Below, one piece after another: positions 13,993-50,037 of a DNA stretch of 64,000 bases. A program made the position numbers and the translations under genes. Origin of the DNA: Bugula neritina (lineage: Eukaryota; Animalia; Bryozoa). The stretch covers positions 11,778,818-11,842,817 of the forward strand of contig OZ037772.1 of NCBI GenBank assembly GCA_964035545.1, in the 5' to 3' direction. A model generated the notes under the pieces. That model was not told where the DNA came from and searched no databases. It saw only the letters and a list, made by a program, of their open reading frames with translations. Every line of letters begins with the position of its first letter. The stretch's first letter is position 1.

Positions 13993-16875
13993 TCAACATT
14001 CGTCAGATGATTCATCATCTGGATTGTTCCGGTTGGCTATAAATACATGGAGGTACTGGTCCAGGAAGTAATTGTGTGTGAGTTCGTTTACAGGATAACG
14101 ACAAAGCTTACAGATGTACATGCCTTGCGTATGAATGGCTGTCCCAGCCTCGTGACATTTTATACACTTTGCCTTATTGATAGTTTTGTTACAGTCTATA
14201 GCAATTTCATTCACGGGTTTCATCCAATCAAATTTCTTGTGACTGTTGCTAAAATGGGATTCTATTTTGTTCCACATGAACTCATAAAAACCACATATTA
14301 GACATTTGTAAGCCTCACACTTGGTACATTTGCTCATGTACTGGTGCACTTTGTAGGCATCCTTTGCAGTTCCTGGGCAGTCCACATGACAAGGAAATAT
14401 TTTGATGTCATCTTCCAGTTTTGGAGCTTTACAGGGAAAATCTGCGGGTCGGTTTGTAAACTCGGTGGTCACCGCCAAGTTGGGATTTTTGTGACCAGTT
14501 CGTTCTAGATGTCTGGCATATGAGTACTCTTTGAAGAAGTCTTCCCCACATCTGAGACACTGGTACCTCTTGCAGTTCGGGCAGTAGCTACCCTTCCCGT
14601 CCGTATTCTCTAAGTAGTACAGGCTATTCTTAGCACCACAGAAGCATCCAACGAATGGAAGAATTTCAGAAGTTGACAATTTGCTTGGAAGGGTTTTGTG
14701 TTCTTTACTTAAAAATTTGCTCTAAAAAATGTGAAATATAAATGCGTAGATTGTTGCACAAAGTTGATTCTTTTTAGAATCCTGTGAGAGGTAGTGAGAT
14801 AATTGACATAGACATGTTGAAATGCTCATGTTTATTGCACCATGTTACTATGTGGCATTTCTCTATTTAGCACATCATTATATAAAAACAAAGCTTTCAA
14901 CATTATGATAATGATCTGGTTGATCTTTAAATTGTACAAGAATCATGACAAAGTTATGACACTAACACTGTATACATTAAGGCTAAGTTCACTAAAAAGG
15001 ACTAAATATCTTTATTAAATATTGAGTTCCACAAATATTGAAACAAAGAACTGTGCCCGCAATATTATTTGAGAGCTGTCTAGCAAATTGATAAGTGAAA
15101 CATATATGAAGTACCCATCTATCATTAGTCTGCATAATGTCAGCCATTTCATCCAGAAACTTAAACGTCCAGTTTATTATTCCTTTGAGCCGTGTTATCT
15201 CACCATATCTCACAATCTCTATCAGCAGGGGCCGTATTGTATGGAACATCTACAGCAAGGTGCAGAGTATGTGCTGGTATAAACTTTGTTATGTAGTATT
15301 AACTTAGGATAGCTTTTTGAATTTTAAGGTAACTCTAACATTTACGCCAGCTAATTAGGGAAACAAATATAATTAAATTAACATATTTTGTTACTGTAAA
15401 CACATTCACACTTGCACGACAGTGGATGTTAATTATTAAACAAAACATTTATTTATATTATGTTATTACAAAGCTATATAATTAGTGAGGCGGATGCATG
15501 GAAAGCCAGCAATAATTAGCAACATTATTACATGATGCTATAATGAGATTTAAATGGCTATTACATTGCAAAGATGTGGCCATATGAACATTCTCATAGG
15601 CCGTGGTGGGTTACCCTCCTTGGGGACTGGTACTGACTCTAAGCGCTTGATGACCTCGGCAACTGTCAGGGCTATTGAGTTGGTGATAATGTAACATGGT
15701 ACAAATGGGGCTGCAATAAACAGCATGTTGTATATAATGTTTCATAACATTTGTGTGAGAAGATTATCTTAACATTGCATAGAATAAAACAATAACAGCT
15801 CACTAGTTAAAATACTAGGTATTGCTCATACTACTAGCTGTTTATTTATTTTACTAGGGGTCAGTTTATTTGACTAGGTATTGTAGCTCACACTAGAAAG
15901 TATCAGCCCATACCACTATAGTTGTCAGCTAGTATTTCTATTAAAATATGACATTGTCTTTTTTAAACCTTCATCTTATACCTTCCACCTTGATATAAAT
16001 AGAACCTTGTAAACTTATAAGTATAATAATAGTTCTAGCTGCACAGTACCGACCTATCTTCTCAACTGCGTTGGCGTGTGGCAAAAACAGGGGTGTAAAC
16101 ATGACCTCATTCTCTCCGAGAACTTTAACTATGCTGGCCAATGGCAGGTTGCTGTTGGGAAAATTGATGGTCGTTTCTTCTATTCTGGAAAATGACAAAA
16201 GAATTGAAAGGAGATAACTCCCCAATATCGCAGAGCTGGTGCTGCTGTAAACCTATGTGATATCCTGCTGTCGATTTAACAGATTACTGAATATTGTTAC
16301 AGCTAGCTCATGCTGCACTCACGTAGTATAACTAAAAACTTGTTGAACTATAAATATTTGTTCACCTAGTATCCACACAATACTTGTTCATGTTTTGGCA
16401 ACAATTTGCATGTTAAACCTGCATGGGTGTTCTTATACCTATATCTACATCTAAACTAAACCAGACTTATAACACTCACTATAGTCATAAACACAATTAT
16501 ACTCAACCTATATGTACTCAATATAATTGTACTTGTCTTATATGCGCTAGCTCTCACTCTACACAAACTCAACCTACTTTCACCTATATAATAGAAATAA
16601 TCAGCTAAAAATATAAACCTACCTTGACCTACATTTACTAGACTTACATTATATTATACTCATTATACACATACTACTGTTAAACATAATCAACCTACAC
16701 AAACTCAACATACGTGTAACTAGCTTGTATGTATTTAATCTTGGCTTACATTTACTCAGCTGACAAGTGTATTTACTCTCAACTTACACTTAATCAACTC
16801 TACTTACTTGTTCAGTACAAATGCCACAAATATCTCTTTATTGGTTGCTGGTGGGTTGTTTCTTTTGGGAGGCAT
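13993..16875 (-). CDS. Zinc-finger gene A: unassigned N-terminal domain + Cys/His-rich ribbon-C2H2 domain (402 aa, 5 exons)
   Basis: Exons 16875-16808, 16184-16054, 15710-15565, 15249-15115, 14721-13993 splice in frame (1209 nt); starts MPPKRNNPPATNKEIFVAFVLNK; exon sizes and phases shared with paralogs at 18140 and 46321. Confidence 0.85.
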
Positions 16876-18139
16876 GATTTTTGTTGGTTGTAATTTGCTA
16901 TTTTTAGTTTACCAGAAACTAGTAATTATATAGCTTTTTGCTCATAGTTTTGAGTTCAGATTGTTTTAAATCAACAATAGTCATAATTATACTATTTCAA
17001 AAATGAATTGTTGCACACTGCAAAATCCACACCAACACTTCTGCTAATAAAACATAAAATAGTTTTAGAATATATAATTGTAATTATATCCCAAAGCTAT
17101 TGTTGGGCAGCAAAGTTATAGATCGAATTTATTGCTAACTTTAAGACTCTTATTGTTTTTACTAACAATTCCTTGTGGGGCAGAATATTGTGCACTCAGT
17201 TGTTATTCAATTTACTTTAAATATCTAAAGTTAATATAAAGAAAATAATAAACTAATATTTCAGTAAAATAAGTTTAAAATGGGCCTTGATGTATATGTA
17301 CAAGTATATTGCATATATTCTCTTTATTCAAATTACAGTACTATTTGAGACTTCTCAAAGTGCGTTAAAAAGGTTTTGTAGTCTTATTAGTTGTTTATAG
17401 CAGAACGGGCTTTGTTTCTTGTAATTCAAGAAATTTTAGGATGTGAATTAGGCCAGTCTTGAAAGCAATCTTAAAATTTATAGCAGCATACAAGCAAATC
17501 ATATCTAAGCAGTGAAGGTCAAAGTTCAAACATTGTATCATGTACATTATAGTGAGCATTTGTTTGGTTCGTGAATAGCTGGGTGGCTGGTAAATGACAG
17601 ATATAGCTGAAGATTGCAAGCCAGATATTAAATGAGTATATTCATCTATAATATCTGGCTTGGGATCTTACACATGGGTATGTCTTTATGTAGCTTCTTT
17701 TTACCATAATAACTACTCTCCTAACTAATAGTTTTAATTTGTATAAAATTTAAACAGGTTCAACTTGAAAAAATATGTTTTTGTCATAAAATAGCTATAC
17801 TACATATTTTAAACAATATCAACTATAAAATAAAATTCACTTTTATAAAAAAATTCGTTTTTATAAAATGAAAGTTATTTTTATACAATAAAATTATATT
17901 TTATATGAAATACTATAAATTATTCTATATAGCCTATTAGACCTAAATAAATGAAAATGGCCAGCATTGTTGCATTGCTCAAACGTAGATCTCTATAACA
18001 ATCACTACTTTGAGTGAGGTAATAGTTGGAAATGTTTTACAGGGGACTTAGTTTATAAATAAATCATCACCGAGTCATCGTTAAGCTTTTTTATAGTTTC
18101 AAAACTAAGGATATTTTTGTGAAATTAGAAGCAGCTAAA

Positions 18140-19558
18140 ATGGAAATGACATTGGTTCCTGCAGACAATGAAGAAGAATTGGGGTTCTCCTACCCGCCCC
18201 CAACCAACAGAGAAGTATTTGTAGCCTTTGTTCTAACAAAGTAAGATAATAATTATGGCTGATTTACAATAGGTTGACAGGGTTACAAAGTACAGTTTCA
18301 TTACATTGGAGGCCATCTTTGACATTATAAGCTTTATGCAATCTGTGCTAAAATATTTTATAGAATGAGCTCTATATGTTATAATTAACATACTGTAGAC
18401 AGTATTAATTGACTCTGCTGCAATTGAAATAAATTACCTACATTATTTAGGACAAACTCTGTGTTAGTGAAATATATAGAAAAAGTTTAGAGCCTAAAAG
18501 TAAATGATTGTGTTTTGTAGACTTGAACAAACAGCAATAGACTTTCCAAACAGTAATCTAACTTTTGATGAAATTGTCAGCCTTTTCGATAAAAATGAAG
18601 TGGAGTTTTCTCCCCTGTTCCTAGAATATGCTATTGCTATTGAGACAGGTGATGTATAAATCTTAAATTAATATTAGATTTTATTTAGATATAATTAAAT
18701 AATTTTAAAGATTTATTAAAACATTTTATTGGTTTTAACAGATTAACTAGCTTTAATGTGGTATCATGAATACAAAACAAATTTTCCCATTATAGCGTTT
18801 AGAGAGCCTGTACATTTTATTTTTACAGAGTTAAAGAATTCAAGTTTTACAATTGAAAGTTTTTCTGTTGGCCTGACAATTGAGCAGCTGATAAACCAGC
18901 TTGAGACAAAAGAGTGTGTGAAGCAACTTAATGATGAAGACGTAACGAAGATCTCCTGGACTGATATTTGTGAGGTGAGACCATTTATCCATTAACCAAT
19001 ACCAGAAAACATTGTCCAAAATTTAAACCATACATTAATTACTATAGTAGGTAGTTCAAATCTTGCTAAAATTTTAATTTAATTTTATATGGCTTATATA
19101 TTTACATTAAAATTCAAAAATTGATATTTTTGTGCTTAAATTATTAAATAGGTAATTTAATGCATTTTTTCCAGCAAAATTATTACATTTTTTTCAGGAC
19201 ATTGTTTTAGCATTAAAGGTTGTCTTCTCATAAATTAATTTGAAAGTTTATCAAATTGCTAGTTTAGCTTAACAGAATGTAAAATTGCAATATTAACTTT
19301 TAGTTCAAACATATATATAAACTAAACTATAAAACCAATTAAATTATACATATATTATGTGCCATAAATTAAACTATGAAATTGATCAGATTAAAGATAC
19401 GTTTCAATGTATACTTGTTCTAGATGTTTCACACAGTGAGACAAGTGCTGATTGATACAGTGAAGTACTTTGAAGTAGCCAGACTCAAGAGAATCTTAGA
19501 CTGGATGTTTGAGCTTCTGGACAGGTTCTCTGCCTTGACATCTCCAGAATTTCATTGG
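18140..19558 (+). CDS. Gene B, exons 1-4 encoding the same unassigned N-terminal domain
   Basis: Exons 18140-18240, 18521-18648, 18829-18974, 19424-19558 in frame (YPPPTNREVFVAFVLTK / FPNSNLTF..VEFSPLF / SWTDICE / MFHTVRQVLIDTVKYFEVARLK). Link to a 3' exon unresolved. Confidence 0.8.
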
Positions 19559-20783
19559 GTGATTTGAGTGACAGGAAACTGCAGGTGCTCTCATATGTGA
19601 TTTGGAGGGAAAATCAATAGAAATACGATAAGCCAAAGTTGCCGATGACTTACCCATGTGACTATTTTTCTGCTAATGTATGGTTTATTGCAAATAATTG
19701 TTTATAACTGCAACAACAGTCTACAGAGTAATAGAAATGTACAGTATTGATGCTTAAGTGTTAGATGTTGCAATGATGTGAATCTATTGCTTCCACTTGT
19801 TCAAATGAGGTGAAGGGTGATGTACCTTTCATTTATTACATTATTATATGTTATTGTATAGCTTATTAATTTTTAATGTTATTAGAAAGAAATCTAGTTG
19901 AACAAAATGCAATTTTTATAAAACTTTGCTACAGTTATACTTGCATCCTTTTCCGCATAATTAGTAATTTCATTTTTCATTTTCATATTGATAGTAAGTA
20001 ATATAATAAACTATAAACCCATCAATGGTCGAAACTTCGATATTCTTTAAGATGGCAGTTACATAAAATTTTTAGCTTTGGCTTTTATGCTTATTTAACA
20101 AAAGCTACAATAGCAGATAGCTTTAAATTTGTCCAAACTAAACTACAATATTACTAATTTTACTAGTTTTACTAGTTTTACGGTGATAATGATTATATTT
20201 GGCTATTCTAAAGAGGGCAGTTACATAAAGCTATATAGCCATCGAGCTTTAGCTGGGCTTTTATGCTTTTGCATTGAATGTTTCAGAAACATAATTATAT
20301 ATATATCTCAGCATTAACTGCAGTTGGAAGTTTCTTTAAGTCGGAAAGAAAATTTATAGAAGATCAGAAACAAAGTTAAAGGAAGTAGGCTAGTATTATT
20401 ACTATCTGATCATGCTTTTAGCATGACACTTAATTTGTAGCTTTTATCTAATTAACATTTTAGTAGCTCCAAATTCTCTCTAAAATTTGATATAATATTT
20501 TATTGATCGGTTTAGCTGGAGCCTAGTTTTATTTGCCATTGTCTAGCTGCTTCTACTCCAGTCCACAATATTTGTTTTAATTTTGTTTATATCAGCTAAT
20601 AATAGGCACTGTAACTCAGAGTTTCTTACACACAATGCAATTGTCAGATTATCAAAAGTTGGCCAACAATAAATAAGATGGTTGGGTTTTAAAAAACAAT
20701 TGTTCTCTAGAAAATTTATTTTAAATTTTATTTAAAAATTTCTTTAAATTGCAAAATTAGTTGATGTTTAAATGCTTATACAG

Positions 20784-21136
20784 GAATTGCCTCCGAACCA
20801 ATAAGAAGTTCTGTAATAAAGTTGCTTTATTTTCCAGAGCTGATGAGTGCAGACGACAATAAGGTCAAGAAGGTCTTTATCTGCCCTCCTTGCGAGTACG
20901 AGACCAGCAATGAGGCTAACTTCCTAGAGCATTTCCGAGGCCATTGTATCGACCAGTTCCACAGGTGCGGTGTGTGCGGGGAGATCTCCACCTGTTTCCG
21001 AATCATGCTAAAGCATAAAAGGGAGCACATGGGGATGAAGTTTCTAAGATGTGGTCGCTGTGATGCCAACTTTCTAGACCTCCTAGAGTTCAAAGGTCAC
21101 CTGTTGAGATGCAAGAAGCTCAAACACGCTGCTTGA
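20784..21136 (+). CDS. Classical C2H2 zinc-finger exon/ORF (2x C2H2 + C2HC), probable last exon of gene B
   Basis: CPPC..F..H...H, CGVC..H...H, CGRC..F..H...C; acceptors at 20783 and 20837, ATG at 20843; AATAAA ~21252. Both acceptors need phase 1 but exon 4 of gene B ends in phase 0. Confidence 0.7.
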
Positions 21137-21934
21137 GACCTGGCATGTCAGATTTTATTGTCTACTTAAATAACATTTGCAGTAGAAAATAATTTTAGTA
21201 ATATTCCTTTTGTATTTTATGCACTAGCTGTAAATTGCTTATATATCATAAAATAAAGTTCCATTGAAATTTTACATACAAGCTGATTTGTTTCATGTGA
21301 AGCATAACGGCAAGTACAATTGCACTAGAGAGGAATTAAATGATTGATTAAGACCAACAATATATGCTTTCAGTTTAATAAACTTAAGCAAAAAATGTTG
21401 GTTAAATTGATACTGCAAATGATTAAAAAAAAAAAAAAATTCATGCATCCACAACTAACGTGGAATCATTACAATAGTTTGCTTATAAATACCAGTGTGA
21501 TTAATAGCAGCAGAATGAAAATAAACTAAATCAACTATTATAAGAATATTATCAACATACTATGACAGAAGTTGTTTGCTCTTTTTGTGGCATGAATAAT
21601 GGAAGCTGCTGTAAGCAGCTCTGGTTTGAAGATTTATGAGTTCAGAGGTGAAATTTAGGCAAGAAATTTGAACCCTCAACTCTAAACTCATGTCCCCCAA
21701 ATTACTACACTCACTCACCTTCAACTACGAGCAGCCTATGCATGGGTTTTTATTTAATTTTATTTAGGCTTAGATAAAATTCAATTGCATTGTAATTTAA
21801 AAAAAAAGAGTTATAATTCAATGTTGCAGCCAAAATAAAATATTGTATATAAACAATCTGGTTAGTAAGAATGCAGCAGAACTAAAATGCAATATATAAA
21901 ATTGTTACACTGTAAGTTGCACTAAAATCACATA

Positions 21935-22598
21935 TTAGGTATCCGTTTTGGCCAGTTCAGTGTTGCATATCTTACAGTAGAGAGTAAAATAGTGTCCGTC
22001 TTTCCTGACAGCAGTCCCTGACATGTAACATCTCGGGCACCTCAACCTTCTGATTGCCAAGTGCCTCTGCATGAGAGATCCATGAACCAGCTTCCTCGGA
22101 TCCGCTGGTGGCTGGTAGTCAGTCACCAGAAGTCTTTCCAGCCGACATCGGTTCCGGTGTGTCTTCACGCACAGCAGACACTTGTAAAAGCTGCACAATG
22201 TGCACTTACTTATGAACTGATTTACTTTGTACGACTGAGCTGGTGTCCCCTGACACGAGTAGGAGCCACAGTGGAACAAACCTATCTCCGGCAGCAAGGT
22301 TGGTCCTGTCTCTGATTCAGGAGTTCGGTTGAGATGAAGCGTGGTGACGACAGCCGTCCTGTTTATGTGGTCTTCTTTGCTCCTCTGATGGTTAACCACA
22401 TGGTCAAGACATATGAACTCTTCTCCGCACATCAGACACTGGAATTTGCAGCAGACTCTGCAGAAGCTGATGGTATTCTCAGAGCTGTGTTCTGTCTGGA
22501 TGTGTTGTGGACCTCCAGGAGCTCCACATAGGCAGCCAACCAGCGGGTAGCCTGTTGATTGGCTGGCTCCAGCTCTAAGGGGAGGTAGTGCTTCGGCC
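21935..22598 (-). CDS. Cys/His-rich zinc-finger family member (terminal exon); second C2H2 lacks both His
   Basis: YPLVGCLCG..CRVC..FQCLMCGEEF..H..H..NR..C..CQGT..KVNQFISKC..C..YKCLLC..CPRC..CKIC; phase-2 acceptor TTTCAG|GGCCGAA equivalent to that at 26748; upstream exons not found. Confidence 0.75.
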
Positions 22599-22998
22599 CT
22601 GAAATGTACCAAGACATTTGTTACCCACAGTATAATCTTACCATCACGTGTGTGTCAGCCAACCCAACCCGTGGAAGTCGTATTACTAAGTGAGGCATTC
22701 GTGAAGTTTATGCCTACAGAACCATGTCAGACTCTGTCAGCAATTAGTAGCTGCAACCTTTAAAAATCTAGTTTTTTTCAGAATCACAAAGTAGCCAATA
22801 ATATCTCTTTTATAGAGAAAACCCGACAAATTATATAAGTTCTCTACAAACAAACTATTAGCTATTATATATTATAGTTTAATTAGTAAAATCCAAAAGG
22901 AATGATTATTTGTTTATTATGCTAGATATGATCAGAGTAGTCAATTCCTGTGATTGGCAGCTTGAAAATAATATGCATGACTTGAGGTTTTAGCTTAA

Positions 22999-23768
22999 AG
23001 GATTGCTCTATCTTGTCTAATAAATGGCCATTTAGGTCAAACACACATAATATTGTGTTTTTCTAAGCATGCATTGACAAAAAGCATTTGACCAAAGGTA
23101 AAAAAAGTTAGTTGAAGTTGAGGGTGTAGATTGGTAACAGCCAAAACGCCGATTTTTGAAATGAGCTGGGAAATGTGACGTAACAGCGCCAGCATTCCTG
23201 CTGGTCACGTGACTATACAAATGAATAACTATAGAAATATGACTGTGAGATTTAATCTTTCAGCTCGTAATTTGTATATTTATAGAAGTGCAAATGTGAA
23301 TTATCTCAATCTATAGTTTTTTGACATTTTAAATAACATGTATGTGATAACATTAGGCCATATTTTGCTTGCATACATTAGAAAAAAGCATTGCAAAAAC
23401 ATGCATTCTTTAGGATGAATGCCTACAATCGATCTAAACTAGGTCAGATTGTGCAATATTACGGGCACACCAAAGCTGACCTATATAGCGCACTGTAACT
23501 GCTTGAGCGTTATTGGTTGATGTTGTGCCCAGCAACCTTGAATACAAGCGTTATAGTTAGCACGTGCAGCATAGTTACTGGCGTTCACACGTCACGTATT
23601 AGGCTATTCTTTTTCATGGCTGAAAATTTTACCTCCCTCAAAATTGGAATTTTGAAAAGCTGTTTTCTAGGCACATATCCCTTTGCAAAGCCACAATTGT
23701 TTGCATACACATTAGATTATAGTTCATAATTATAATGTGATTGTAATAAACTAAGATTGAGCAATCCT
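22999..23768. mobile_element. Non-autonomous Kolobok-type DNA transposon (MITE)
   Basis: TTAA|AGGATTGCTCTATCTT ... AAGATTGAGCAATCCT|TTAA: ~16-bp TIR (1 mismatch), AG terminus, TTAA TSD (22995-22998, 23769-23772); no transposase ORF. Confidence 0.8.
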
Positions 23769-24587
23769 TTAATGTGTTTTTTTAATGTAGATTACTGAAA
23801 TAAAATAAAATGATATAATTCAAAAATAAACAGAGTGCTAATAAAAATTGAGGTAAATAAATACTCACATTGAGAAGGTTGTGAAAGCTCACTCTTCTAC
23901 AAATCTGTTGATGTTGATGTAAAATGTTGAAACTGTAAATCACTGAAACTAATGCGGCAGCAGGAAATCTGTGAGTTGGGTGAAGGTAAGAAAACTCTTC
24001 TAATATATATTATAAGACCAGCTAAAAGCTCTATAATATGTGGCTTCTGTAGAACACAAAAGCCATTTCTATTAGAAAGAAAGCCTTTCCAAGCCTACAT
24101 TTACTAACTTTTCTCACTAGAGGGCGTAAGCTGCAGCTGCAGATAAATTTATGATTTTAGTTGCAACTTTTAATTTAATAAATAATTCCTTTATCCAAAC
24201 TACAACAGGTCAACATCAAGCATGTCTGCTATAGAGTAAGTATAATTCTCTAACTATTATAGCTAATCATATAAATGCTATTTCAACTTTTAGAAAATAT
24301 TGAAAAGCTAATTCTCATTTAATTAAGTTGCATATATAACAATTTATTTGTGTGAACTACATTTTTCTTCAATGCAATTATTACACCATTCACAACGTAT
24401 AGTTTGATTGCAATATAAATTGTATATCAAATATGATGTTTAAAAATTTAAAATAGCTTTTTTTGATGAAAACTCCAGTTTTTAATTTATAATCTAAAAC
24501 AAAATATAATTTGAAACACATGATGATCCAAGAGAGTACAACTTCTCTAATGTCAGAGGTAATGAAATGCATCATCTGAAATTTTAG

Positions 24588-25203
24588 CCTGTCACGTTCT
24601 TCAAGTTGGCGTAGTTTTGTTGGTTGCGGATGTGGAAAATTGGGAGGAATTGTATTCTCCAGGAAAGATGCTAGCTACTGTCAATCCTGCCAGAACTATC
24701 AATGCTTGGTTTGTGGCGAAGAGTTCTCTCAACTGGTACATCTAGAACGACATCTGTCACTTGATAGTCACATGATGCAGCCAACTTGCTCGACTACCAA
24801 CTACATGAACCGACCGCTAGATTCTCCGGAGTTCCCAGCCCTCAGAAAGGACATCAAACTACTCCGGTGTAAGGGCGACTGCTCCGGAACAGCGAGTGAT
24901 GCATTCAAGCTGAACCAGTACGTCAGCAAATGCAGATTCTGCCAACAATATAGATGTCTTCTGTGTGGACTTCTGCACAAGGAAAGAAAAGTTGTCTCAA
25001 AGCATGTAACCTATTACCATATGTGTAGCCCTCTTTCTGAACCTAGCCTCAGAGTTGTCACTCTCAACTGGGTACTCACTGGTCGACTGAGTGCCAGCAA
25101 TGGGTTGAGTCCGACAGATAGGTTGAGTCTCATTAAACAGTTGAATGGAAGGAAACGTCAAAATGATAAAAGTTCTAAGCTGTCTATTTTAAATACTTTA
25201 TAA
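24588..25203 (+). CDS. Cys/His-rich zinc-finger family member, C-terminally truncated (possible pseudogene)
   Basis: Acceptor TTTTAG at 24587 (phase 2); SFVGCGCG..CQSC..YQCLVCGEEF..HL..H..NRP..DIK..C..CSGT..KLNQYVSKC..C..CLLCG..H...H; final C4 ribbon absent. Possible start mini-exon MSAI(D) ending 24235. Confidence 0.7.
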
Positions 25204-25277
25204 GAGATGTCAGTTTTAAACACTTTATAAGAGATGTCAGTTTTAAACACTTTATAAGAGATGTCAGTTTTAAACAA
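25180..25277. repeat. 27-bp tandem repeat (~3.5 copies)
   Basis: TTTATAAGAGATGTCAGTTTTAAACAC units; supplies the stop codon of the 24588 ORF. Confidence 0.85.
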
Positions 25278-25614
25278 TATATAGCATGTCATAAAATGTT
25301 TAGTTGCCCAATTTTATCTTTACATGAAACCATTTTATGCTATTAAATTCTCACCTTTCTCTGCCCAAATTTTATGTTAATCATGAATACACTGACAAGA
25401 TTTTTCAATACACATGTCCACTGCGTACAATGTTATGCATGATTCTGCATGTTGTCAACACACCTAAACAGACTTGTTACTTTATGGTAGATCATTGTTT
25501 ACAGCACAACACTTCAGTCTTCAGACTGCTCAAAAACTTCACAACCAAAATGAGGCTCAGCAGCTATACTTCATTACACTGAATAAATTGTATAATTAGT
25601 TTAATCGTTCAGCC

Positions 25615-25793
25615 ACCAGAGATAACTATTAGACTGTGTACCATAAGTAGCTATTAGACTGTGTACCTGGGATAACTACTGGGTTGTGTACCAGAAATAA
25701 TTATTAGACTGTGTACCAGAGATAACTATTAGACTGTGTACCAGAGATAACTGTTAGACTGTGTACCATAAGTAGCTATTAGACTGTGTACCA
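25615..25793. repeat. 25-bp minisatellite (~7 copies)
   Basis: ACCAGAGATAACTATTAGACTGTGT units with variants. Confidence 0.9.
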
Positions 25794-26083
25794 AGGAATG
25801 GCAGCATATATAAACAAATTAAGTTATAATTAAATATTAATTAACATGAATTATAAGTGTGATTAATAAATGTAGTGAGCAAATTTATAGTCAAGTTTGA
25901 AATACTTTTTGTGGGAATATAAAAAATTACCTCTCCTGTCCAACTATTACGCATTACAATATCCTTTTCAAATTATGTCAAAGCTCATGTAATATTTTAT
26001 TGATTAAATAATTCAAAAGTATAAAGAAAAATAATTTTCTACAGATCCTTGAACATTTGTGTTTACAGTTGATTACAGAAACA

Positions 26084-27020
26084 CTAGTTGGTAATTATTA
26101 CAATACCACAGAACCTACAGAACAGGTTGTAAGGGCTGGCATGCTGGGCACGTATGGCTGTGCCATGACACTTGCAGTGCTCGCAGCTCAAATTCATCAG
26201 CCAATGATTCTCACTCACAGCCTTAGCAGAAACTGGTGCCAGAGGGTTGACTTCGTGCTGGGCGGTCACGTGCTCCAGAAGTCTGTATCTATCACTGTGG
26301 AACTTAGCACAGAGGAGACATCTGTATAGCTTGCACATCTGGCACTTGCTAATATACTGATCTACTTTACTGGCATCATTGGGAGTGGCCGGACAGTCAA
26401 CTGTGCAATAGAGTAACTTAATGTCATCGGTTAGAGTTGGTGCAGAACCTTGTTTTACTGGTTGGTTGGGGTAGTCTGTAGTGACTCGAGCTGTCCCCTG
26501 GAGGTGATCTGGAGCTCCGTCTTGGTGTCTCAACGCCTCTTCCTTCAAGCCAAACTCTTCACCACACATTAGACACTGGAATCTGCCACAGAACTGGCAG
26601 AAGCTAAGTGTAGAAGTACTGTGGTGGTCAGTTTGAACTATCTGAGGACCTGCTTGGTGGCCACACCCACAGCCAACCAGAGGGTAGGCTTTCCATCTCC
26701 CGGCGAATGAACCCTCAGCTGGTGTCACCCCAGATTCTCCTTCTGCCCTGCAGGAAGTCAAACTCAGTCTATGAGTCTCAACTATCAATTCATTCCGGAA
26801 GTTAAAATTTATTAAATAAAAATTAAAAACATTTTCAATTGTATGTTTGGATTCACACTAGTAACAATGTTATTTCCTAAAATAGTAGTACTGGATTTTT
26901 CATAAAGCCTAAATTAAAATGCTGGTTTTCAATGGAATTGAAGAATATGTCTCTCTAAAAAAGTGTAAAACAAAATATTACTCACCATAAACTATGATAA
27001 TACATTTTTTTGCAGATCGA
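26084..27020 (-). CDS. Cys/His-rich zinc-finger family member; terminal exon 26748-26084 plus 35-nt exon 27020-26986 (SICKKMYYHSLW), further 5' exons likely
   Basis: Complete motif set (YPLVGCGCG..CQFC..FQCLMCGEEF..H..H..DIK..C.VDCPAT..KVDQYISKC..C..CLLC..H...H..CEHC..CRFC); compatible splice phases; upstream phase-0 donor at 27158. Confidence 0.8.
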
Positions 27021-30000
27021 CTGTGTAATGGAAGAAAGTTCAAGTTATCCAACAACAAAACTAAACTGGCTTTTGAAAGTAAATAAAGTTTCGCTCTAAA
27101 AGCTTTATGAGTTTAAATCTAAAAAGTAGCAGAAGTAAGAGAGTAGCTTTCGACTTACATGATTGCTTGATAACTCCTTTGTAGCCTTCTTTGTTAAAAA
27201 TGAAGAAGAAAGTGGGGGGTTTGTATTTTCTACAATAACACATGCATGGTTACTGGCCCTAAGTCTATCAGAGAGTTTCTCAGTCACACTCAATTCTGAG
27301 CTGCTTATAGAGCAATTCTAAGTTATTTCTCTATTCAAATATTTTATTATATTGCTTATAGTTGCTGATAAATATAATGTAATTCATAAAAGAAGTGTTA
27401 TGTGACTGAGCTAAATACTATAAATTTTCATATTTGTAACATAGTTTCGGATATCAGCATTTCTAGAAGCCTAAGGCAACAAGCAATTTAAATAAGTAGA
27501 ACCATCCACTGAACTTAAAAAGTTAATATTATTGAGTTCATCGAAATCATCAAGCTTATCTTTGCTAAGAGAAGAAAAATTAGAGCTGTGATTATTTATG
27601 TAACAGTAAAATAAAATCAATATATCAAATATAATAACTATTACTAATAGTAGTATTAAAACTGTAAATAGTAACTGTAATATGAATAGTTTGCTAATAC
27701 TATAAATAGTAATGGTAATAAACTAATAGTAATAGTAATACTAATTACTAATAAGTAATAGTAAATTTAATATTGAAGTATAAAATAAATTACTATAAAT
27801 ATAGTACAATAATATATTATAGTAGTTATATTTATATTTATATTACACATATTAATATAATTAAATGGTATAAAATATTTTAGAAAGAAAAATCTTCCCC
27901 ATACTTTAAAAGATTTTATATACCTGATAGTTTAGTGTGTCTTCACTGCAGGGTGGAAACTAGATCTTTACTGTCTGAACCAGTAATAGTATTTGAACTG
28001 GGAAGAATTCCAGTAGAGATAATACACATTCTCTGACTGCAACACCAGTATTCATCTGGTTGGAGCATTATGTAATGCTTACAGTTGAATTAGCAGCACA
28101 ATGCTCTTTCCATTACACCATGTAATTATCTGAAACTGAGAACAAAGACTCCTGGACAGGGTACACATTCTGGAGACAGTAAAGAGTAAGTGAAACAACA
28201 TGACAGATGTTAAATGGTCCATTATCACTTAATTTTTTGTTCCTTTCTTAAACCTACAATACAACTGATAATTTAACAAAAATGTAAACTCAGAAGTGCC
28301 TCAGTTGTATTGCTATACTTAGCAACAGATTAGCAAACTCTGTCAATATAGCACCAGGCGAATAGTTTGACCTCCAGTGAAGGCCATTGGTGATGTTGCA
28401 AGGGCATTCATTCATAATTGCTACTGTACCCTATAACATTTTACCATGGGGGGGGGGGTTCTCACAGTGATATGGTGATTTTACACCCATGTGAATTCTA
28501 TTAGAAAATGCTAACATTTATATTTTAAAGGGGCTGAGTTAAAAAATGCAATTTATACAATTTCTAGAATCTAGCATGTCTAACTATATTTCTCAACTCT
28601 GTACTAATCTTCTGTTACAATTACCTTAGCATTAGGGGGATAATGATTAAGCTGTTATAATATATTATCTTAACATAAAAGCAAGAAATAGAAGTGATAT
28701 CTTTCATGTAGCAGAAAATTCATCGTGAGCCCCTTTGGGTGAAGGAAAGCGAAAGACAACAGTATAACTAATAAAAGTATTAGTCAATCACAAAACAGTT
28801 TAGGTGATGTATTATGTTTTATTTTACTAATTAAAGTTTATTATATTATAATATAATGCAATATAACTTATTAAAGTATATTACAATGCAATACAATATA
28901 TTAAAGTATAATATAATACAATATAACATATTAAACAATACATTATAATATAATGAAATTACAAGTATCAACATAATTAAATTTATTGCACTGTATGCTT
29001 TTAGGAAGCCAAAACATTTACAAGGTTATGCACACAAAATCTCATTCTTGGACACATAAATTGTTATCTTCAAATTTTCTAAACTTGCTAAAATGAATTA
29101 AATTTGAAAAGAAACTCAACGTTATTTTAAAAAAATAGTTTGCAATTGGTGTAATATAATGTAATATAATGCATGTTGTTTATTGAAAAATAAAACCAAA
29201 TTAATGAAAAGAGGCAAGACTAATGCTTGAACTAAGACTTCACAGAGATACGTATCAAGTTTTCAATTACAAAAATGTAAATCTTATAGATGGTCAATAC
29301 TTTAAAAAAATTTCATGTAGGTTTCATTCAAAAAGTTTAGTAATATTGCAAGGAATACTGTTAAAAAAAGTTGGGAAAGTCCCATATAGTAGTATTCATA
29401 TGTAAAAGCATACAATATGGATGATGTCATCCTAGATAGATGCTTCCCAGTTAGACGCTAGGCTAAATTTCCCACTTCCTGCACTTCCCAGCTGGAGACT
29501 ATTTTCTTATTTTGGTACAATATATATTTTATGTGCAATTTGTTTGAATATTATTAAAATATATGTCTATTTAAATATAAACTTGAATCAGTTGTTTGCT
29601 ATCTAGCACATGAATAAATTTTATTTTGGTACTTGTACAAAACTATAAACTATGCATGTAAAGTTGGTGATAAGACAACTTCTATATAAATGAAAGTTTT
29701 TACCCATTACAATATAATAATATAATATGTACTATAATATAAAATAATAAAACGTTGCATTTATTTTTACCCTCTTAATAATATAGTTTAGTAAATTATA
29801 TGTAACTTGGCTGATTTTCATCCCAATGTTATATATACATGAGACATTAGGCTAGTGCTATAACTCCTAGACCATGCTGTCCCCATAGTTATAAAACAAA
29901 ACTTAACGCAAATTCCCTTTCTTTTAAAAATAATGGGCATTGTAAATGGAAATTGCATGATTTTAGGTGACTATTTGCACAATTTGTTAGCTTTTAGTAC

Positions 30001-42200: not shown

Positions 42201-45200
42201 ATATTGTATCTTAATTTAATTAGTATAATACTCTGAATTGCATTAAATTCTAATTCAATACATGGAAACTTATTATGATATATGTCACATTGCATTGTAC
42301 TATACTAAAATTTAGCACAATACTTAACGTTTTATTACAATGCACAATGCTACATTTAATTTCATTATGTTATTACACAATTCATAGCATTATGTTATAT
42401 TAAAATCACATGTACATACAATGGATTTTTTGACCTATATATAATAAATACTATAGTATTTTAAATTGTTAGGTAATGATATATTATTCGATCTATATGC
42501 TATTAAGCAATGTTTTGGTACAGACGTAAATATAAACAAAGTTAATATCTGCTTGCAAGGCTAGTGAATTACTGATAATAAATATGTACCAATTATTTCA
42601 GCTGAGTGGGAGCATAGTAGCTGCTTTTAGCACTATTGGAGCAACTCTAATCATTTTAACAGTATTTCTCGCAATCCTCGTACCAAATGTAGGTGAGTGG
42701 TGCTGATAATATAGTTATTATATTTTCTTTATATCTTAACAAGCAACATATTCATATTTTAGAAAACCAACTGGCAATAACAGTAACTAACTATCATAAA
42801 TTTTCAATTAGCCAGGAACCAGTGCTTTACACTCAAATGTAGCTTTGCTGACAGTTTAAACACTAAATATTTTATTATTTTACCATAAAAAAGTGACTAT
42901 ATAAATAGACATATCTTACTGCAGTTTGCACCTGCTCAGAGTTTATTTGCTGAAGCATTGTAAATATACATGTTTTTATATTATTCTGAATACAACAAAG
43001 CTAGTGACAGCTAATGTATTTATGTGCTTTAGAAGCTAAAAAGTCAACTGCAGGAAAAAGCAGCTTACAGTTATTGAAGATTCCGGGAGTAGCTCTGATG
43101 TTGATAACAGTCATCGTGTGTAACCTGGTGATATCATGGAGGACAGTCTTCTACAGTGGCTTTCTCTACCATACAGTAACTATCTTCTTTAATAAACGTA
43201 TTAGTATATATAGGGAACATGCAGTCGTGGTCTGGGGGTTCGAATGTTTGCTTAGTATTTAGCCATGGGTTTGAGTCCCTGACAAAAGCCATTGATGATG
43301 TATATGTAGGAAGAGCATCCGTAAATACATGAGAATATATAAAAAAGTGCATGAAAAATGTAAAACAATTATTGCCTTTATTGCTAGTTACTATATGATA
43401 TGATAATATATTTTATATGAAAAGACATATTGAAAATACCCACACATCATTGCAGTTAAAGTTTTAAGTTAAATGCTATAATATATATGTATATAGACTG
43501 AGAAACATTACAAATGGTTATCAATCAATTATATGTTATGCAAAAGTAGTAAAAGGTATACTTTCAAAATCATTATAATATTTACTATTTTTAGAACATC
43601 ATATCTTCAAATATTTACATATATTAGTTTGAAGAGTGTGTTTATTACATTACACAGTTGGCAAAGCTTATAGGTGTACTATTATAGCTGCTCAAAATTA
43701 TACTATTGCAACAAATAGTTTGCATATATGTATTCTTGGTTTAAAAAAGCAGTTGATTTGTAACAAAGAATATTTATAAGCTCATTATAATGTAATTACA
43801 AATTGGAACATTTTAAATTCTTTGTAGTTTGGGCTAGGACCTGGAAGCGTGGCCCTTATTTTTGTAGCAGTGTCTTCCTTCTATGTGATGCTGTGTCCAT
43901 TGACCTCTTATGTCTTAGGAAAGGTACGTACTGCACAATTGACAATAGATGTTATTGAAACTGTATACTAAAACGTCTAAATTTTTGACTCATAAAAAGC
44001 TGTAGATATACCAATCGCCATATACTGCAGCATTTTTTTCAACAGATCGATGCTTCTAATATATTTCGAACAGATATAGTTGTTGATATATGTAAATAAT
44101 GCAGAGATCAGTATGAGTCATTCGTAAGAAACGGGTACAAAGCTGCAAGATATTTAAACGATATTACCTTTTTCCTGTTACATAACGTTGTCAACGTACA
44201 GTGATACTTTTTGTTACAGCATAAAATAACTCTCTATTATATAGACTATGTCCTACACGATTATCACATCAATGATGGTTTTGTATTATTTGTGTGTTTT
44301 TATGCGTTATATACGGTTAATATAGAGAAACACTGAGTTATTGTTGGAATACATAAGTTATGCTATCTTTATTTCAGGGCTACATATTCTCTATGATGCT
44401 AGCTCTTTTTACCCTGAATGTAGTGCTACTGTTGTTTATTGGACCATCTCCTTTACTAAACTTTATTTTTCACCATAAAAAGTGAGTGCTCCTATATCTA
44501 TTACATGATATTATATTATATACATGTTAACTCAAGTTTTACCTATATAATATATAAAGTCCCATAAATTTTCAAGTAAACTGTTAGACTGTGATTCTTA
44601 TTTACAGTTATTTACCACTCACTCTGACTTGCCACTTTATGACAATGATTTCCCAGCAGGGCGCCAATATACCACCATTCAAGGCTATGCTAGATTTGGC
44701 AGTGTGAGTATTATAATATATAGCGGGTGAAGTGCTTGTGCATGTGCTAATGTCATCAATTAATAATATTATACTGAACATGCAAGTTTCATAATGGAGA
44801 CAACTAAAAACTTGCAAAATGATTAACTATTTAATGCTCATGTTTTTTCAATGAGAAATATCCTTACGCATATTTTATATGTTTAGCTACTCAAATTTAT
44901 GAAAATCAACTGAAATTATATTGCTTTGAATTAAAACTTAATAATTTGTAAAACAATAATTTATCAGTTTGATATTTCTTCATTTAGCGTGAATGGATAT
45001 AAAGAAGACAGTTTGGAGTTGTATGGAATGACGAGTGGTCTGGTAAACTGTGGACTTGGTGTAGGCTGGATCCTTGGTCCAGGGATTGGAGGAAAAGTTG
45101 TGGAGGAAGTTGGATATGGTTCCAGTCTCACCTACTTGTCATTTCTCCAGTTTACTTTGGTATGTGTCTTTTACCAAAGCAGCTTTCATTTATATTACAG

Positions 45201-45899
45201 CGGCTGATTCTTTGCAGAACATGTTTTTCTTTGATAGTTTGCATACAATTGACTAAAGCAAATTCAAAGTGACAATTGATACAGATAAAAGCTCAATTAA
45301 TCTTTTATTTTTGTTGAAAATCCAGGTATTTTGCAACACATAAATTCTGAAAACATTTTAGTTCAATATTAGAGAATATTTAAAATTGTGCTAGTTAAAT
45401 TTAATTAAAATCTATTGGTAATTGTAGTTCATTCTTAACACTGTTTAAAATAATTGTCAAAACTTTTTGCTTGGTATAAGCTACTTAATAAGCAATTATT
45501 CTATATCTAAATTAAAAAAATCAAAGAGTAGATGATTCTAAAATGGTATTATAAAAAGAAACTATAACAAAACTAAAATTGATTCTCTTTATAATTAGTA
45601 GAGCCTATATAACATTGTGGATTGTTTTTATATTATGTTTTTAGGTATCAATCATCATTATATATTTATTGGCTATGAAGTTTTTTAAAAAACCACTTCG
45701 ACTAACAGAAGATAATTTGTGCCAAGATTATGACAGCTTATTAGAAAATGATTCACTTCATCAAACTACTGACAGCGATAGCGGCAGCAGACAAGTATCA
45801 AATATAGCCAATCAGCTAATCAGGAGGCTACACACATTGTTTGACAAATCAGTGACAGAGACCTCTGTAGTTAGTTGTAATCCGCAACCTGAAAGTTGA
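39270..45899 (+). CDS. MFS transporter, SLC18B1-like, paralog 2 (11 exons)
   Basis: Exons 39270-39503, 40334-40407, 41054-41201, 41830-41898, 42602-42692, 43033-43175, 43828-43923, 44378-44481, 44608-44703, 44988-45159, 45645-45899; same structure as paralog 1. Confidence 0.88.
41225..41432 (-). mobile_element. tRNA-derived SINE, full-length copy
   Basis: Reverse complement aligns to 41562-41770 and 48654-48875 (AGCAGCTGTGGTCTAGGGGTTA...TTTCTCACAGGAATGG). Confidence 0.8.
41562..41770 (+). mobile_element. tRNA-derived SINE, full-length copy
   Basis: A-box-like TGGTCTAGGGG, B-box-like GAGTTCAAGCC, conserved core GCCATT.GTGATGTTAGGAAGAGCATCC, tail TTTCTCACAGG. Confidence 0.82.
43221..43321 (+). 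mobile_element. tRNA-derived SINE, 3'-truncated copy (weaker remnants at 34479-34588 and 28378-28408)
   Basis: GCAGTCGTGGTCTGGGGGTT...GCCATTGATGATG...AGGAAGAGCATCC. Confidence 0.65.
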
Positions 45900-46320
45900 T
45901 AAATAATTTTTATGCAGCCTAGCTACCAAAACAATTTTTCTTGAAATGATTGTTTTCTATCTTGTATAGGTAAATATTACATACATGCAAGACTATGAAT
46001 ATTTTCATAAAGTTGTTGATACATCTACATATAAAGACCTTTTGTATAATTAAGTATTATATAAATAATATAAATTTTATATGAATAAAATTACTTATAA
46101 TAAATATGTTTGTTTAATTAGTGAAAGCCAGCAACAATGCTTGCTTTGGCTAAAGAGATACTGCATATTGTTGATATGTTGTTATGCCTAACAATATGCT
46201 GCACTATTGTTGCGCAATCATTAGCTCATTCAACTTACCTGCAGGCAGAACTGTGCTAAAGGAATCAACCTTTTAGCCAAAAGAAAAACTAGAAACACAA
46301 CTCGGAGTAAATTTCTAATA

Positions 46321-48573
46321 ATGCAGAGCAAAGATGGAGATAAGGATTGTTATCCTCCAAGTAGCAGAGAAATATTTGTCTCGTTCATACTATTCAGGTG
46401 AGAGTTATACTTGGAGGAAACTTTGCAGGCGCAGGGTGTCCAACCTTTACAAAGCAAGTCGACCACTGAAATGGAGTAATCGGGTGGTGAGGACTGAATT
46501 GTAAATATATCTCGAGCTTGGAGCCACAGCATCAGTTTTCTTAAATTGCTTTATTCCAAATTATTATGAATCATTACACATTTAAGTCTTAATCACTACT
46601 GCAGGCTGCATATGTTTTTTAACATGTATATAAATGAGACATTTAAAGGGTGCTGTTCCACTCTAATTCATATTATATGTGTACAAAATAATTTTATTTA
46701 TTATGCTTTTGAGGGCCTCATAAATGTAGGCTGAGGGTAAGCATTTAAACCTGAGAGCGCCTGCTGAACAGCCCTGAGGCTGCCTGCTAGACAGCCCTGG
46801 GGCCGCCTGCTGGACAGCCCTGGGGCCGCCTGCTGGACAGCCCTGGGGCCACCTGCTAGACAGCCCTGAGGCCACCTGCTGAACAGCCCTTCACTAGACT
46901 GTAGATTCGGTTTTATGCAGCATTGAAACTAATTGAGACGCAAAGCTATTATTTATGATAAAAAAGTCAATTGTTACAGTTATCTATTGATAAAATTGTA
47001 GCAAGATAGAGCCTAGACTCTAGAGGTTTTTAGATTTTGGCTAGAGAAAAGCATAAACAGAGTGCATCTGCACTTGTTTTAATCTGATTAAGCAAGCTTA
47101 CTGAGTTGAGTGTTGAGTTTTGTTTTTTATATATATAGAGTAGAGGAAACCTGCAGAGATAGCCCCAATAGCAATATACAGCTGGCTGATATTGTTGAGC
47201 TACTCAGTGAAAACGATGTGAAGTTTGCTCCTCTTTTTATAAAAGTTGTTGATAATATAGAAAAAGAAGGTAAGGCATTGCTCTATTTCATAAAATGAAG
47301 AATTTTAGTTTACTGAATAATAATACCAAGTGAAATGATACTTGTCTTTTAGAAACTTGGATTTTGTCAATTTTATAGAAATACATGTGCAAAAAACAAT
47401 ATATGTTTTGTCATTTTATATATAATATATGTCATGATTATGATTATTCTGTATTTGCAGTGCTTGGGAAATCGGCTTATTGCTTTCACAATTCTGTTGC
47501 TATGACAACCGACCATCTGAGAAAGGAAATACAGGATTTGCTGAACAGTCAAAGGAGGCAGCATGGAGAAAGAGTAGGAGAAATTGAGTGGGAGAGCTTG
47601 TGTCACGTGAGGGTGTATAATATTAACACACACGCACACATTGTATATGTTAATATATACAGTATTATTTATTATTTTATATAGATGTACTTATATATGT
47701 ATATATGCATGTATAACATAATTATGTATATCATATTATATATCCTTGTATCTGTATGGTTGATTAATACAACACAATTAATTTTAGGTTTTCAATGCAG
47801 TGAGGCAGTTGATCATAGAAACGGTTAAATATTTTCATATTTCACGTCTCAAAGCAATTTTGGAACTGATGCTGGATTTTCTCAAAAGTGTGTCTTTTCT
47901 AATTCCAGCTGAATACTTGGTGAGTATATACAATACTTGGTGAGTATATACAATACTTGGTGAGTATATACAATACTTGGTGAGTATATACAATACTTGG
48001 TGAGTATATACAATACTTGGTGAGTTATAATATACAATACTTGGTGAGTATATACAATACTTGGTGAGTATATACAATACTTGGTGAGTACATACAATAC
48101 TTGGTGAGTGTATACAATACTTGGTGAGTACATACAATACTTGGTGAGTATATACAATACTTGGTGAGTATATACAATACTTGGTGAGTATATACAATAC
48201 TTGGTGAGTATATACAATACTTGGTGAGTATATACAATACTTGGTGAGTATATACAATACTTGGTGAGTATATACAATACTTGGTGAGTATATACAATAC
48301 TTGGTGAGTATATACAATACTTGGTGAGTATATACAATACTTGGTGAGTATATACAATACTTGGTGAGTATATACAATACTTGGTGAGTATATACAATGA
48401 TGTTTAGCAATCTTTATTGGCAGTTGGTTATGTCAGAAATGCTGCAGGTTTAAAGCTTTTAAAGTCATCACCAATTAAGTTATTCATTTAAAAATTACTT
48501 GTATTTTAATTATATTTCAATTTTAATTAGCAACAATACCAGCTTTGAGTGAGTAAATATTTATATATATATA

Positions 48574-48616
<43 letters not shown>

Positions 48617-50037
48617 TAACAAGTTTGTCCTTGACTCTTAGATCTCTAACAGAAGAGCAGCCATGGTCTGGGGGTTAGAGGTTAGAGGGTTTGCCTAGTA
48701 AGCACGAAGGTCATAGGCTCCAGCCCAGACAAAGGCTATTGGTGATGTTAGAAAGAGCATCCAGCCATAATTGTACTTGTGCCTTATTTAAATTATAAGT
48801 CTTTAGCCTGCTTTAACAAAAATCCTTTCCATCAGGGGTTTCTCACAGGGATAGCGACTATAAACTTGCGTGAGGTTTTATTCATGTTTCTAACAATTTT
48901 TTAAGTGTATAACTACATTTAATCTGAATTTTTAAGCAATTACTTCCCTTGAGTCCTAACAGATAGAAATTAAAAGTAATTAAACTAAGCGAGATTCATG
49001 GCTCACATCAAGAGTCAGTCTCTATACTAATCTAAAATTATTAAAGCTAGTAGCACATTAATATGTTTTTAAATTAAATAATAATATGTAGGTGTATTTA
49101 CAAATCATTTGATGAAAGCAGCTTTTTCAGCATTAATGATAATACAATTTACCTTAATAATTTAATTTTCCAGCAGTTTAGTAAAGAAATTATTTGCAAT
49201 TTAGTAAAAACTATATTACATCTCATTATGCTAAAAATGATTATCTATTGATATATTAAATTAATCTATTAAAATTACTTTGGTATTAATTTTTAATTTC
49301 AAAAATGAATCTGTAAACTTGCTATATAAATGACAGAAAGTTGTTGAATTTTTATTTAGGAACCTGAAGATCTGATGAAGCCATCATCTCCTAAAAAGCC
49401 AGGGCCGAGAGTGTGGCCAGATCTCAGTTCAGCTGTACCAAAAGATGCTTTAGCATTTGTGGGATGCTTCTGCGGGTCAGCTAACAGTATTAGCTACGCG
49501 ATTGACGGGAAGGGACAGGCGAGTGAGTGCAGTGTATGTCAGAGGTTACAGTGTCTGATATGTGGAGAGGATTTCAACACTATGACCAAGTTTAAGAGAC
49601 ATTTACAGAGATTTGGTCACCCAAACTCAGTGGCTACAGAGTTCTCAAACAGACCTCCAACCTTTTTCACCGCAGCTCCCAAACTGAATAAAGACATAAA
49701 ACTCTTCCATTGTTCTGGTGATTGTCCAGGGACTCCCTACAACGCTTACAAGATCAACCAGTACATCAGCAAGTGTACTATCTGCCAGGTTATGAGGTGT
49801 CTCATATGCGGCTACGGCGCTCTCATCTGGGAATATCTTGCCAGACATTTCCAGAGACATGACCATAAGCCTTTTAACTTTAGGAATCCCGTAACAGCTC
49901 TAGCTATTACCAGAAACAACAAAGTATTTAACCTGAAATGTGCTAAGTGCGAGTTTAGTAAAGCTGTGGTTTTGCAAAAAGAAGGTTATAAATGCAAGAA
50001 ATGCTCAACTTTTCTTTCCAGAATTTTCTCAAACTAA
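46321..50037 (+). CDS. Zinc-finger gene C: unassigned N-terminal domain + Cys/His-rich ribbon-C2H2 domain (387 aa, 5 exons)
   Basis: Exons 46321-46397, 47139-47269, 47461-47606, 47788-47919, 49360-50037 in frame (1164 nt); exon 2/3 lengths (131/146) identical to gene A. Confidence 0.85.
46759..46889. repeat. GC-rich 23-bp minisatellite (~6 copies), gene C intron 1
   Basis: GCCTGCTGGACAGCCCTGGGGCC units. Confidence 0.9.
47912..48397. repeat. 20-bp minisatellite (~24 copies) whose unit spans the exon 4 splice donor of gene C
   Basis: AATACTTG|GTGAGTATATAC; the first unit contains the last codons of exon 4 and the donor at 47920. Confidence 0.95.
48654..48875 (+). mobile_element. tRNA-derived SINE, full-length copy
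   Basis: Aligns over its length to 41562-41770; preceded by (TA)n at 48563-48614. Confidence 0.82.

Follow-up and report, generated by a model that had tools for sequence, protein, structure and literature searches.

The DNA considered here, referred to as the window, is a stretch of 64,000 nucleotides (nt) of the bryozoan Bugula neritina (contig OZ037772.1, positions 11,778,818 to 11,842,817 of the forward strand). It is AT-rich, eukaryotic DNA, and between its positions 13,993 and 50,037 lies a cluster of genes in which an N-terminal domain (the N domain) encoded on four small exons, a Cys/His-rich module encoded on a single exon, or both can be recognised. We favour, with a probability of about 0.55, the interpretation that these genes form a small family, so far found in Bugula only, that has grown by tandem duplication of whole genes and combines the N domain with a module having five zinc sites. 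Five paralogues (A, B and C in the window, D and E upstream of it) would carry the N domain, with four of them (A, C, D and E) joining it to the module exon through a phase-0 intron, and M2, M3 and M4 would form a sister group of genes that encode only the module, which in two of them follows a tiny first exon and a phase-2 intron.

Exon structure and its conservation

The N domain of A, B and C is 155-170 amino acids (aa) long and lies on four exons, with intron phases of 2,1,0,0 in all three genes. Each shared exon was recovered by tblastx among the three loci, with group E values of 2e-25 (A/B), 1e-64 (A/C) and 3e-18 (B/C), and gene models built explicitly with canonical GT-AG introns reproduced the phases and exon lengths given in a preliminary description of the window; the conserved sequence pattern reported there is likewise present in all three N domains. 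For gene A, on the minus strand, the five exons of the model give an open frame of 402 aa. A local hidden Markov model (HMM) of the N domain run on the window gave exactly 12 exon matches with E values of 1e-5 to 1e-19, and everything else was noise at E > 0.2.

Because the sole public run that holds the locus is of genomic DNA, the case for the exons is a comparative one; over 13900-19650 the genomic contigs of this run cross the introns and contain no joints, and are uninformative on splicing. The window belongs to tzBugNeri2.1 (GCA_964035545.1), the Darwin Tree of Life assembly of 216.00 Mb in 320 scaffolds plus the mitochondrion (PMC11480708). The comparator is B. neritina assembly GCA_010799875.2, which is collinear with window positions 10,000-27,000 at 77-88% nucleotide identity. 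Non-coding divergence between the two is ~17%. The second assembly is useful for this purpose in that it behaves as if it came from another cryptic species within the B. neritina complex. The exons contain two indels, both of 3 nt, in 3,931 aligned nt and have no frameshift, whereas non-coding DNA contains 100 indels in 5,056 nt, 76 of which are not multiples of 3; at the non-coding rate 59 exon frameshifts would be expected, and the probability of seeing none is 2e-26. The other assembly keeps all 16 splice dinucleotides of A and B, and none of the orthologous exons has a stop codon at a synonymous divergence (dS) of ~0.2. Between the assemblies, the N domain of A has a ratio of non-synonymous to synonymous divergence (dN/dS) of 0.44 and that of B one of 0.78, with the modules at 0.36, and the module exon of A is 86% identical to its orthologue at the amino acid level, with zero indels and a dN/dS of 0.31. 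Compared in this way at the sequence level, the gene structures are conserved under purifying selection between the two cryptic species. The other Bugula lineage has orthologues of A, B and M2-M4, and C and E are represented there by fragments; judged from these, the two lineages separated after all copies had arisen.

An existing annotation bears on the junction between the two parts. The module exon of A matches the B. neritina protein EB796_013576 (P0002) and a Logan contig (P0001). The NCBI model for EB796_013576, an AUGUSTUS prediction guided by transcriptome hints (PMC7576161), already joins exons 1-3 of the N domain to the module and skips exon 4, though this exon is present (L004 11678-11812) and 91% identical in that assembly. 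The joint between exon 4 and the module is marked by phase-0 donor/acceptor pairs conserved in A, C, D and E. On this comparative evidence the attachment of the N domain to a single-exon Cys/His module in A and C, as the preliminary description had it, is a real and conserved architecture within a tandem cluster. The EB796_013576 model (VXIV02001989.1, L004 10001-13868) ends in a non-homologous tail, and on VXIV02001989.1 the B orthologue and the C2H2 exon downstream of it are unannotated. For gene C, the module-only B. neritina protein EB796_012818 (P0008) sits nearest to the C module in the alignment and is probably its orthologue. Intron 4 of gene C opens with a tandem array (47912-48410) in which every unit repeats a donor-like GGTGAGTATATAC motif; the later copies of this motif, if used, would shift the frame.

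The N domain and the five-zinc module

For Pfam, AlphaFold2 (AF2) and the large searches the N domain was taken in two parts, exons 1-3 (as P0002:1-115) and exon 4 separately. Neither P0002:1-115 nor exon 4 of A, B and C has a Pfam family at E <= 10. Among sequences of the PDB there was nothing better than E 0.03, and that match is to an unrelated phycobilisome linker; a protein-language-model search with both parts gave no usable look-alike, and a word-based search with residues 1-115 returned the query itself only. An exhaustive search of 1.84 billion representative proteins with a profile of exons 1-3 yielded P0002, four Bugula fragments of one exon each and a single spurious repeat protein, and no N-domain homologue outside Bugula. 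The earlier description of the domain as unassigned is thus upheld. The N domains are mostly acidic, with isoelectric points (pI) of 4.1-5.4 except for A at 8.6, and the five of them share no conserved Cys pairs. An Atlas model of P0002 has a predicted local distance difference test (pLDDT) of 0.39, and a complex prediction of exons 1-3 against exon 4, bearing on whether they pack as one domain, gave no answer (score 0.01). An internal repeat between exons 2 and 3, hinted at by a MAFFT misalignment, was rejected on an hhalign probability of 0.6% over 13 columns.

The N domain could nevertheless have a known helical interaction fold and be too diverged for sequence methods to detect, making this an ordinary zinc-finger family with a known domain. 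The AF2 prediction is all-helical, the ~10 sequences available make for shallow profiles, and Pfam and AF2 were run on parts of the domain rather than on the full spliced form, all of which would favour such an oversight. We regard it as unlikely, given that Pfam, the PDB sequences and the language-model search are each without a match of note. Among specific candidates, the proteins with SCAN or BTB domains resemble the Bugula genes in fusing a helical N-terminal domain, with possible oligomerisation, to zinc fingers, but neither SCAN (PF02023) nor BTB (PF00651) is matched at E <= 10, and with an AF2 pLDDT of 48 the likeness is one of logic only. ZAD is a dimerisation domain with a treble-clef fold and a C4 zinc site. 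The ZAD-C2H2 genes of insects also place a lineage-specific domain ahead of zinc fingers and are clustered, but the Bugula N domain has no Pfam match to ZAD (PF07776), and ZAD is excluded because the five N domains lack conserved Cys pairs.

The module is better defined. In A, C, D and E it is basic and consists of one exon behind a phase-0 intron, with the order (C4 ribbon + C2H2) x2 + C4 ribbon, so that conserved ligands define five predicted zinc sites (C4, C2H2, C4, C2H2, C4). The layout is fixed and the finger number constant across seven copies, save that M3 is without the last C4 ribbon, both in this genome and in P0009, its closest Bugula match. The pI is 8.2-9.3, except in M4 (6.9). 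AF2 models the module of gene A (exon 5) as one compact domain (pLDDT 74.5, predicted template-modelling score (pTM) 0.74, core mostly > 85), with a hairpin and helix at both C2H2 units. By profile both of these units (positions 46-72 and 132-160) match classical fingers in the PDB, including Aart (5e-7), a consensus zinc finger (3.4e-5), Kaiso, CTCF and others, and at the level of sequence profiles they are C2H2 fingers of the classical superfamily. The closest Pfam family is PF18868 (zf-C2H2_3rep), which M4 matches at 29.0 bits (E 2e-6), under the cut-off of 30.8 bits; C reaches 15.1 bits and the other modules have no match, so that only one of the five modules in the window comes near. A word-based search with the module gave matches in Bugula only. 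The module differs from beads-on-a-string C2H2 arrays in its interleaved C4 ribbons and its compact single-domain packing.

A different view of the module is that it is a protein-binding zinc scaffold of the ubiquitin system, similar to the IBR/RING2 part of RBR E3 ligases, rather than a binder of nucleic acid, with the N domain as an adaptor for substrates or partners. The top Foldseek rows are HOIL-1 IBR-RING2, parkin, HOIP, RNF216 and HHARI, Pfam IBR matches M3 with an E value of 0.0086 (16.6 bits against a cut-off of 24.3), and there are two zinc sites per unit with a spacing, C-x-C...C-x2-C-x4-C-x2-C, that by eye resembles the IBR pattern. However, all of the structural scores are insignificant (E >= 0.2, TM ~0.12), there is no RING1 domain, the modules are basic, and each unit has as its second site a C2H2 finger of beta-beta-alpha type whose profile matches are to classical DNA-binding fingers. 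We consider such a scaffold quite unlikely.

Census, module-only genes and gene B

An HMM search of the whole genome (216 Mb) located only five N domains, three in the window and two outside it. The latter, genes D and E, lie 60-80 kb upstream at C8:11.713-11.720 Mb and were found as weak but paired matches to exons 2 and 4; their models have intact frames of 378 and 385 aa, the same intron phases as A, B and C, and each a phase-0 acceptor onto a module exon. Exon lengths in A/B/C/D/E are 131/128/131/131/131 for exon 2, 146 in all five for exon 3, and 135/135/132/132/132 for exon 4. There are seven close copies of the module, all in the same stretch of C8, and all copies of the family fall within ~115 kb of one scaffold. 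These counts are lower bounds (a first look gave only 5-7 candidates). Four distant relatives of the module stand in tandem on C2 (C2:27457410-27488458; E 2e-6 to 1.5e-4) as single-exon open frames of ~350 aa with an acidic N-terminal stretch and two ribbon + C2H2 units, for which zf_ZIC at E 0.017 was the sole Pfam match; they probably represent the wider family in which the module has its origin. Two other weak matches to the module were set aside. One, on C3, is an ordinary poly-C2H2 protein. The other comes from C8:5.17 Mb, where it corresponds to the N-terminal finger of an open frame like that of a long interspersed nuclear element (LINE). This LINE-like frame starts with a CxxCxFYQCxxCG...H...H finger resembling the first ribbon + C2H2 junction of the module (E 0.46), which is probably just a shared motif.

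Pairwise identity is 21-43% among N domains and 27-47% among modules. In maximum-likelihood trees the modules group as ((A,C),(D,E)) versus (M3,(M2,M4)), and the N domains as (D,E) versus (A,B,C). The two trees are congruent, and therefore the halves have been duplicated together, by whole-gene duplication and not by exon shuffling. This does not fit the proposal in the preliminary description that the modules are interchangeable.

Five Cys/His exons are present in the window, those of A and C and the three modules M2, M3 and M4. Since the local HMM matches only the 12 N-domain exons, M2-M4 are without an N domain, as had been described; the positions previously given for them are correct for two (22598 and 24588) and one base off for the third, whose true acceptor is at 26747 rather than 26748. 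They are not easily seen as swapped partners of the N domain. The acceptor of the module exon is in phase 2 in M2, M3 and M4 compared with phase 0 in the four N-domain genes with modules, and two of the three have candidate tiny first exons, in M3 and M4, whose ATG, frame and donor are all kept in the other B. neritina assembly. For these reasons we treat M2-M4 as separate module-only genes. For M2 no first exon was found, and tblastx gave no upstream exons common to the three. Between M2 and M3, ~770 bp (23004-23771) have no counterpart in the other assembly, through either an insertion here or a deletion there, and between M3 and M4 a 25-bp tandem repeat (25615-25793) differs in copy number between the two assemblies.

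Gene B lies upstream of an open frame with three classical C2H2 fingers, as noted previously, and the two make a candidate fusion. The C2H2 frame has zero indels relative to the other assembly and a dN/dS of 0.53. The strong acceptor ahead of it is cag/AG at 20838, the use of which from exon 4 of B, with its phase-0 donor, gives W-S-stop; of the two AGs of the AGAG acceptor, only the distal one, at 20840, yields an in-frame fusion, and if the donor is left unspliced the frame ends as W-V-I-stop. The two assemblies do not differ in the B donor, the AGAG acceptor, the C2H2 ATG and the stops. Just 3' of exon 4 there is a non-coding block of about 300 bp (19650-19990) that is 93-95% identical between assemblies, above the coding exons, and has no open frame and no Rfam match (an Rfam scan of 13000-28000 likewise gave no match); an AATAAA is found downstream of it at 20005. 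This block may be the 3' untranslated region of B or a regulatory element. In view of the frames at the acceptor, the separate ATG of the C2H2 frame and this possible 3' untranslated region, we lean towards gene B encoding an N-domain-only protein that ends just after the N domain, and regard its joining to the triple C2H2 exon as the less likely arrangement. The position of B upstream of the C2H2 exon is therefore as described, and its splicing to that exon is not confirmed.

Table 1. Positions in the window of exons of genes A-C, the downstream C2H2 frame and the module-only genes.
Feature	Position	Strand	Remarks
Gene A exon 1	16808..16875	-	ATG; 68 nt; donor phase 2; GT donor kept in other B. 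neritina assembly
Gene A exon 2	16054..16184	-	131 nt; PNSN...PLF motif; AG and GT kept in other assembly; dN/dS 0.61
Gene A exon 3	15565..15710	-	146 nt; dN/dS 0.58
Gene A exon 4	15115..15249	-	135 nt; phase-0 donor; dN/dS 0.20
Gene A exon 5	13993..14721	-	linker and five-zinc module to stop codon; phase-0 acceptor ttttttag
Gene B exon 1	18140..18240	+	101 nt; phase 2
Gene B exon 2	18521..18648	+	128 nt
Gene B exon 3	18829..18974	+	146 nt
Gene B exon 4	19424..19558	+	135 nt; donor CATTGG/GTGATTTGA conserved; read-through W-V-I-stop
Triple classical C2H2 open frame downstream of gene B	20840..21133	+	own ATG at 20843; zf-C2H2_REST 1.5e-5
M2 module exon	21935..22598	-	phase-2 acceptor at 22598; dN/dS 0.33
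M3 candidate mini first exon	24222..24235	+	ATG; 14 nt; GTAAGT donor
M3 module exon	24588..25203	+	phase-2 acceptor at 24588; dN/dS 0.58
M4 module exon	26084..26747	-	phase-2 acceptor at 26747; dN/dS 0.29
M4 candidate mini first exon	26986..27005	-	MYYHSL; 20 nt; GTGAGT donor
Gene C exon 1	46321..46397	+	77 nt; phase 2
Gene C exon 2	47139..47269	+	131 nt; Bugula orthologous fragment exists (P0005)
Gene C exon 3	47461..47606	+	146 nt
Gene C exon 4	47788..47919	+	132 nt; phase-0 donor
Gene C exon 5	49360..50037	+	five-zinc module; phase-0 acceptor tttatttag at 49360

Two further features of the window lie outside the cluster. An uninterrupted open frame of 1,339 aa at 3967-7986 (+) is a Ty3/gypsy-type gag-pol in which zinc-knuckle, protease, reverse transcriptase, RNase H and integrase motifs can be seen by eye, and a 359-aa open frame at 59458-60537 (+) is ankyrin-repeat-like, also by eye.

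Interpretation of the family

The preliminary description saw in this locus a possible lineage-specific analogue of the KRAB and ZAD systems. On this reading an effector domain would be recombined with interchangeable finger exons and the cluster would diversify to track transposons. The gene layout fits, in that small effector-like exons precede a single zinc-finger exon and the genes are clustered in tandem, as in the KRAB-C2H2 genes of tetrapods, which share with the Bugula genes an N-terminal accessory domain on small 5' exons, zinc units in one 3' exon, clustering, lineage restriction and fairly fast evolution (dN/dS 0.36-0.78 here). Transposable elements are nearby, and B stands upstream of a different, classical C2H2 exon with which it is frame-compatible through one AG. 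Copy number, finger diversification and evidence of swapping all speak the other way. Five N domains in 216 Mb compare with hundreds of KRAB copies, where an expansion of this kind would run to tens or hundreds, and together with seven close modules of fixed layout they are the small, undiversified set that the preliminary description had itself named as incompatible with its proposal. The module has a constant finger number and no TGEKP-linked tandem array, its two C2H2 units being interleaved with three C4 ribbons; the congruent trees leave no sign of exchange; the modules without N domains use another intron phase, and two have first exons of their own; the joining of B to the C2H2 frame requires the distal AG and that frame has its own ATG; and every copy is older than the split of the two Bugula lineages. 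The N domain also has no Pfam match to KRAB (PF01352), and is ~160 aa and predicted to be multi-helical, compared with the ~75-aa KRAB A/B box. No link between the family and transposon control was found, and a KRAB/ZAD-like system seems to us very improbable. The idea that these exons are open by chance or belong to pseudogenes in decay, for which one might cite the genomic nature of the only public run at the locus and the dN/dS of the B N domain, is refuted by the conservation of frame, splice sites and dN/dS, with 3.9 kb of exon lacking stops or frameshifts across ~0.2 substitutions per synonymous site and five paralogues keeping identical phases.

A Bugula family grown by whole-gene duplication would account for these observations, and its proteins would plausibly be nucleic-acid-binding regulators in which the basic zinc module makes the contact. 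The acidic N domain could then provide a surface for protein interaction, oligomerisation or an effector, and a B protein without fingers could use the N domain that it has in common with its paralogues to modulate them. Several points weigh against this interpretation. The restriction to Bugula has to be read in the light of thin bryozoan sampling and short exon queries. The all-helical AF2 model of exons 1-3, built from an alignment of 11 rows, is of low confidence at its pLDDT of 48, and the B N domain is near neutral by its dN/dS. All of the junctions are drawn from comparative evidence and from one automated gene model, the one that skips exon 4. Nucleic-acid binding and the role proposed for the N domain are suggested by charge and by similarity to C2H2 fingers. 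A bolder form of the proposal is that the N domain is a new fold, serving as an effector or oligomerisation domain for bryozoan-specific multi-zinc binders of nucleic acid, with B and M2-M4 as 'half' proteins that tune the full-length members, and the whole a compact regulatory module born within Bugulidae; we offer this tentatively, and think it rather doubtful in its entirety.

The public gene model EB796_013576 is corrected by this analysis in that it skips a conserved exon. If the proposed family is confirmed, it would show cleanly and on a small scale how a domain and a multi-zinc module, both lineage-restricted, came together in one gene, and how duplication of that gene then gave rise to forms that are full-length, module-only and perhaps domain-only. 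The setting is Bryozoa, a phylum with almost no functional genomics, and there the locus would represent an orphan gene family rather than a new system of transposon control.

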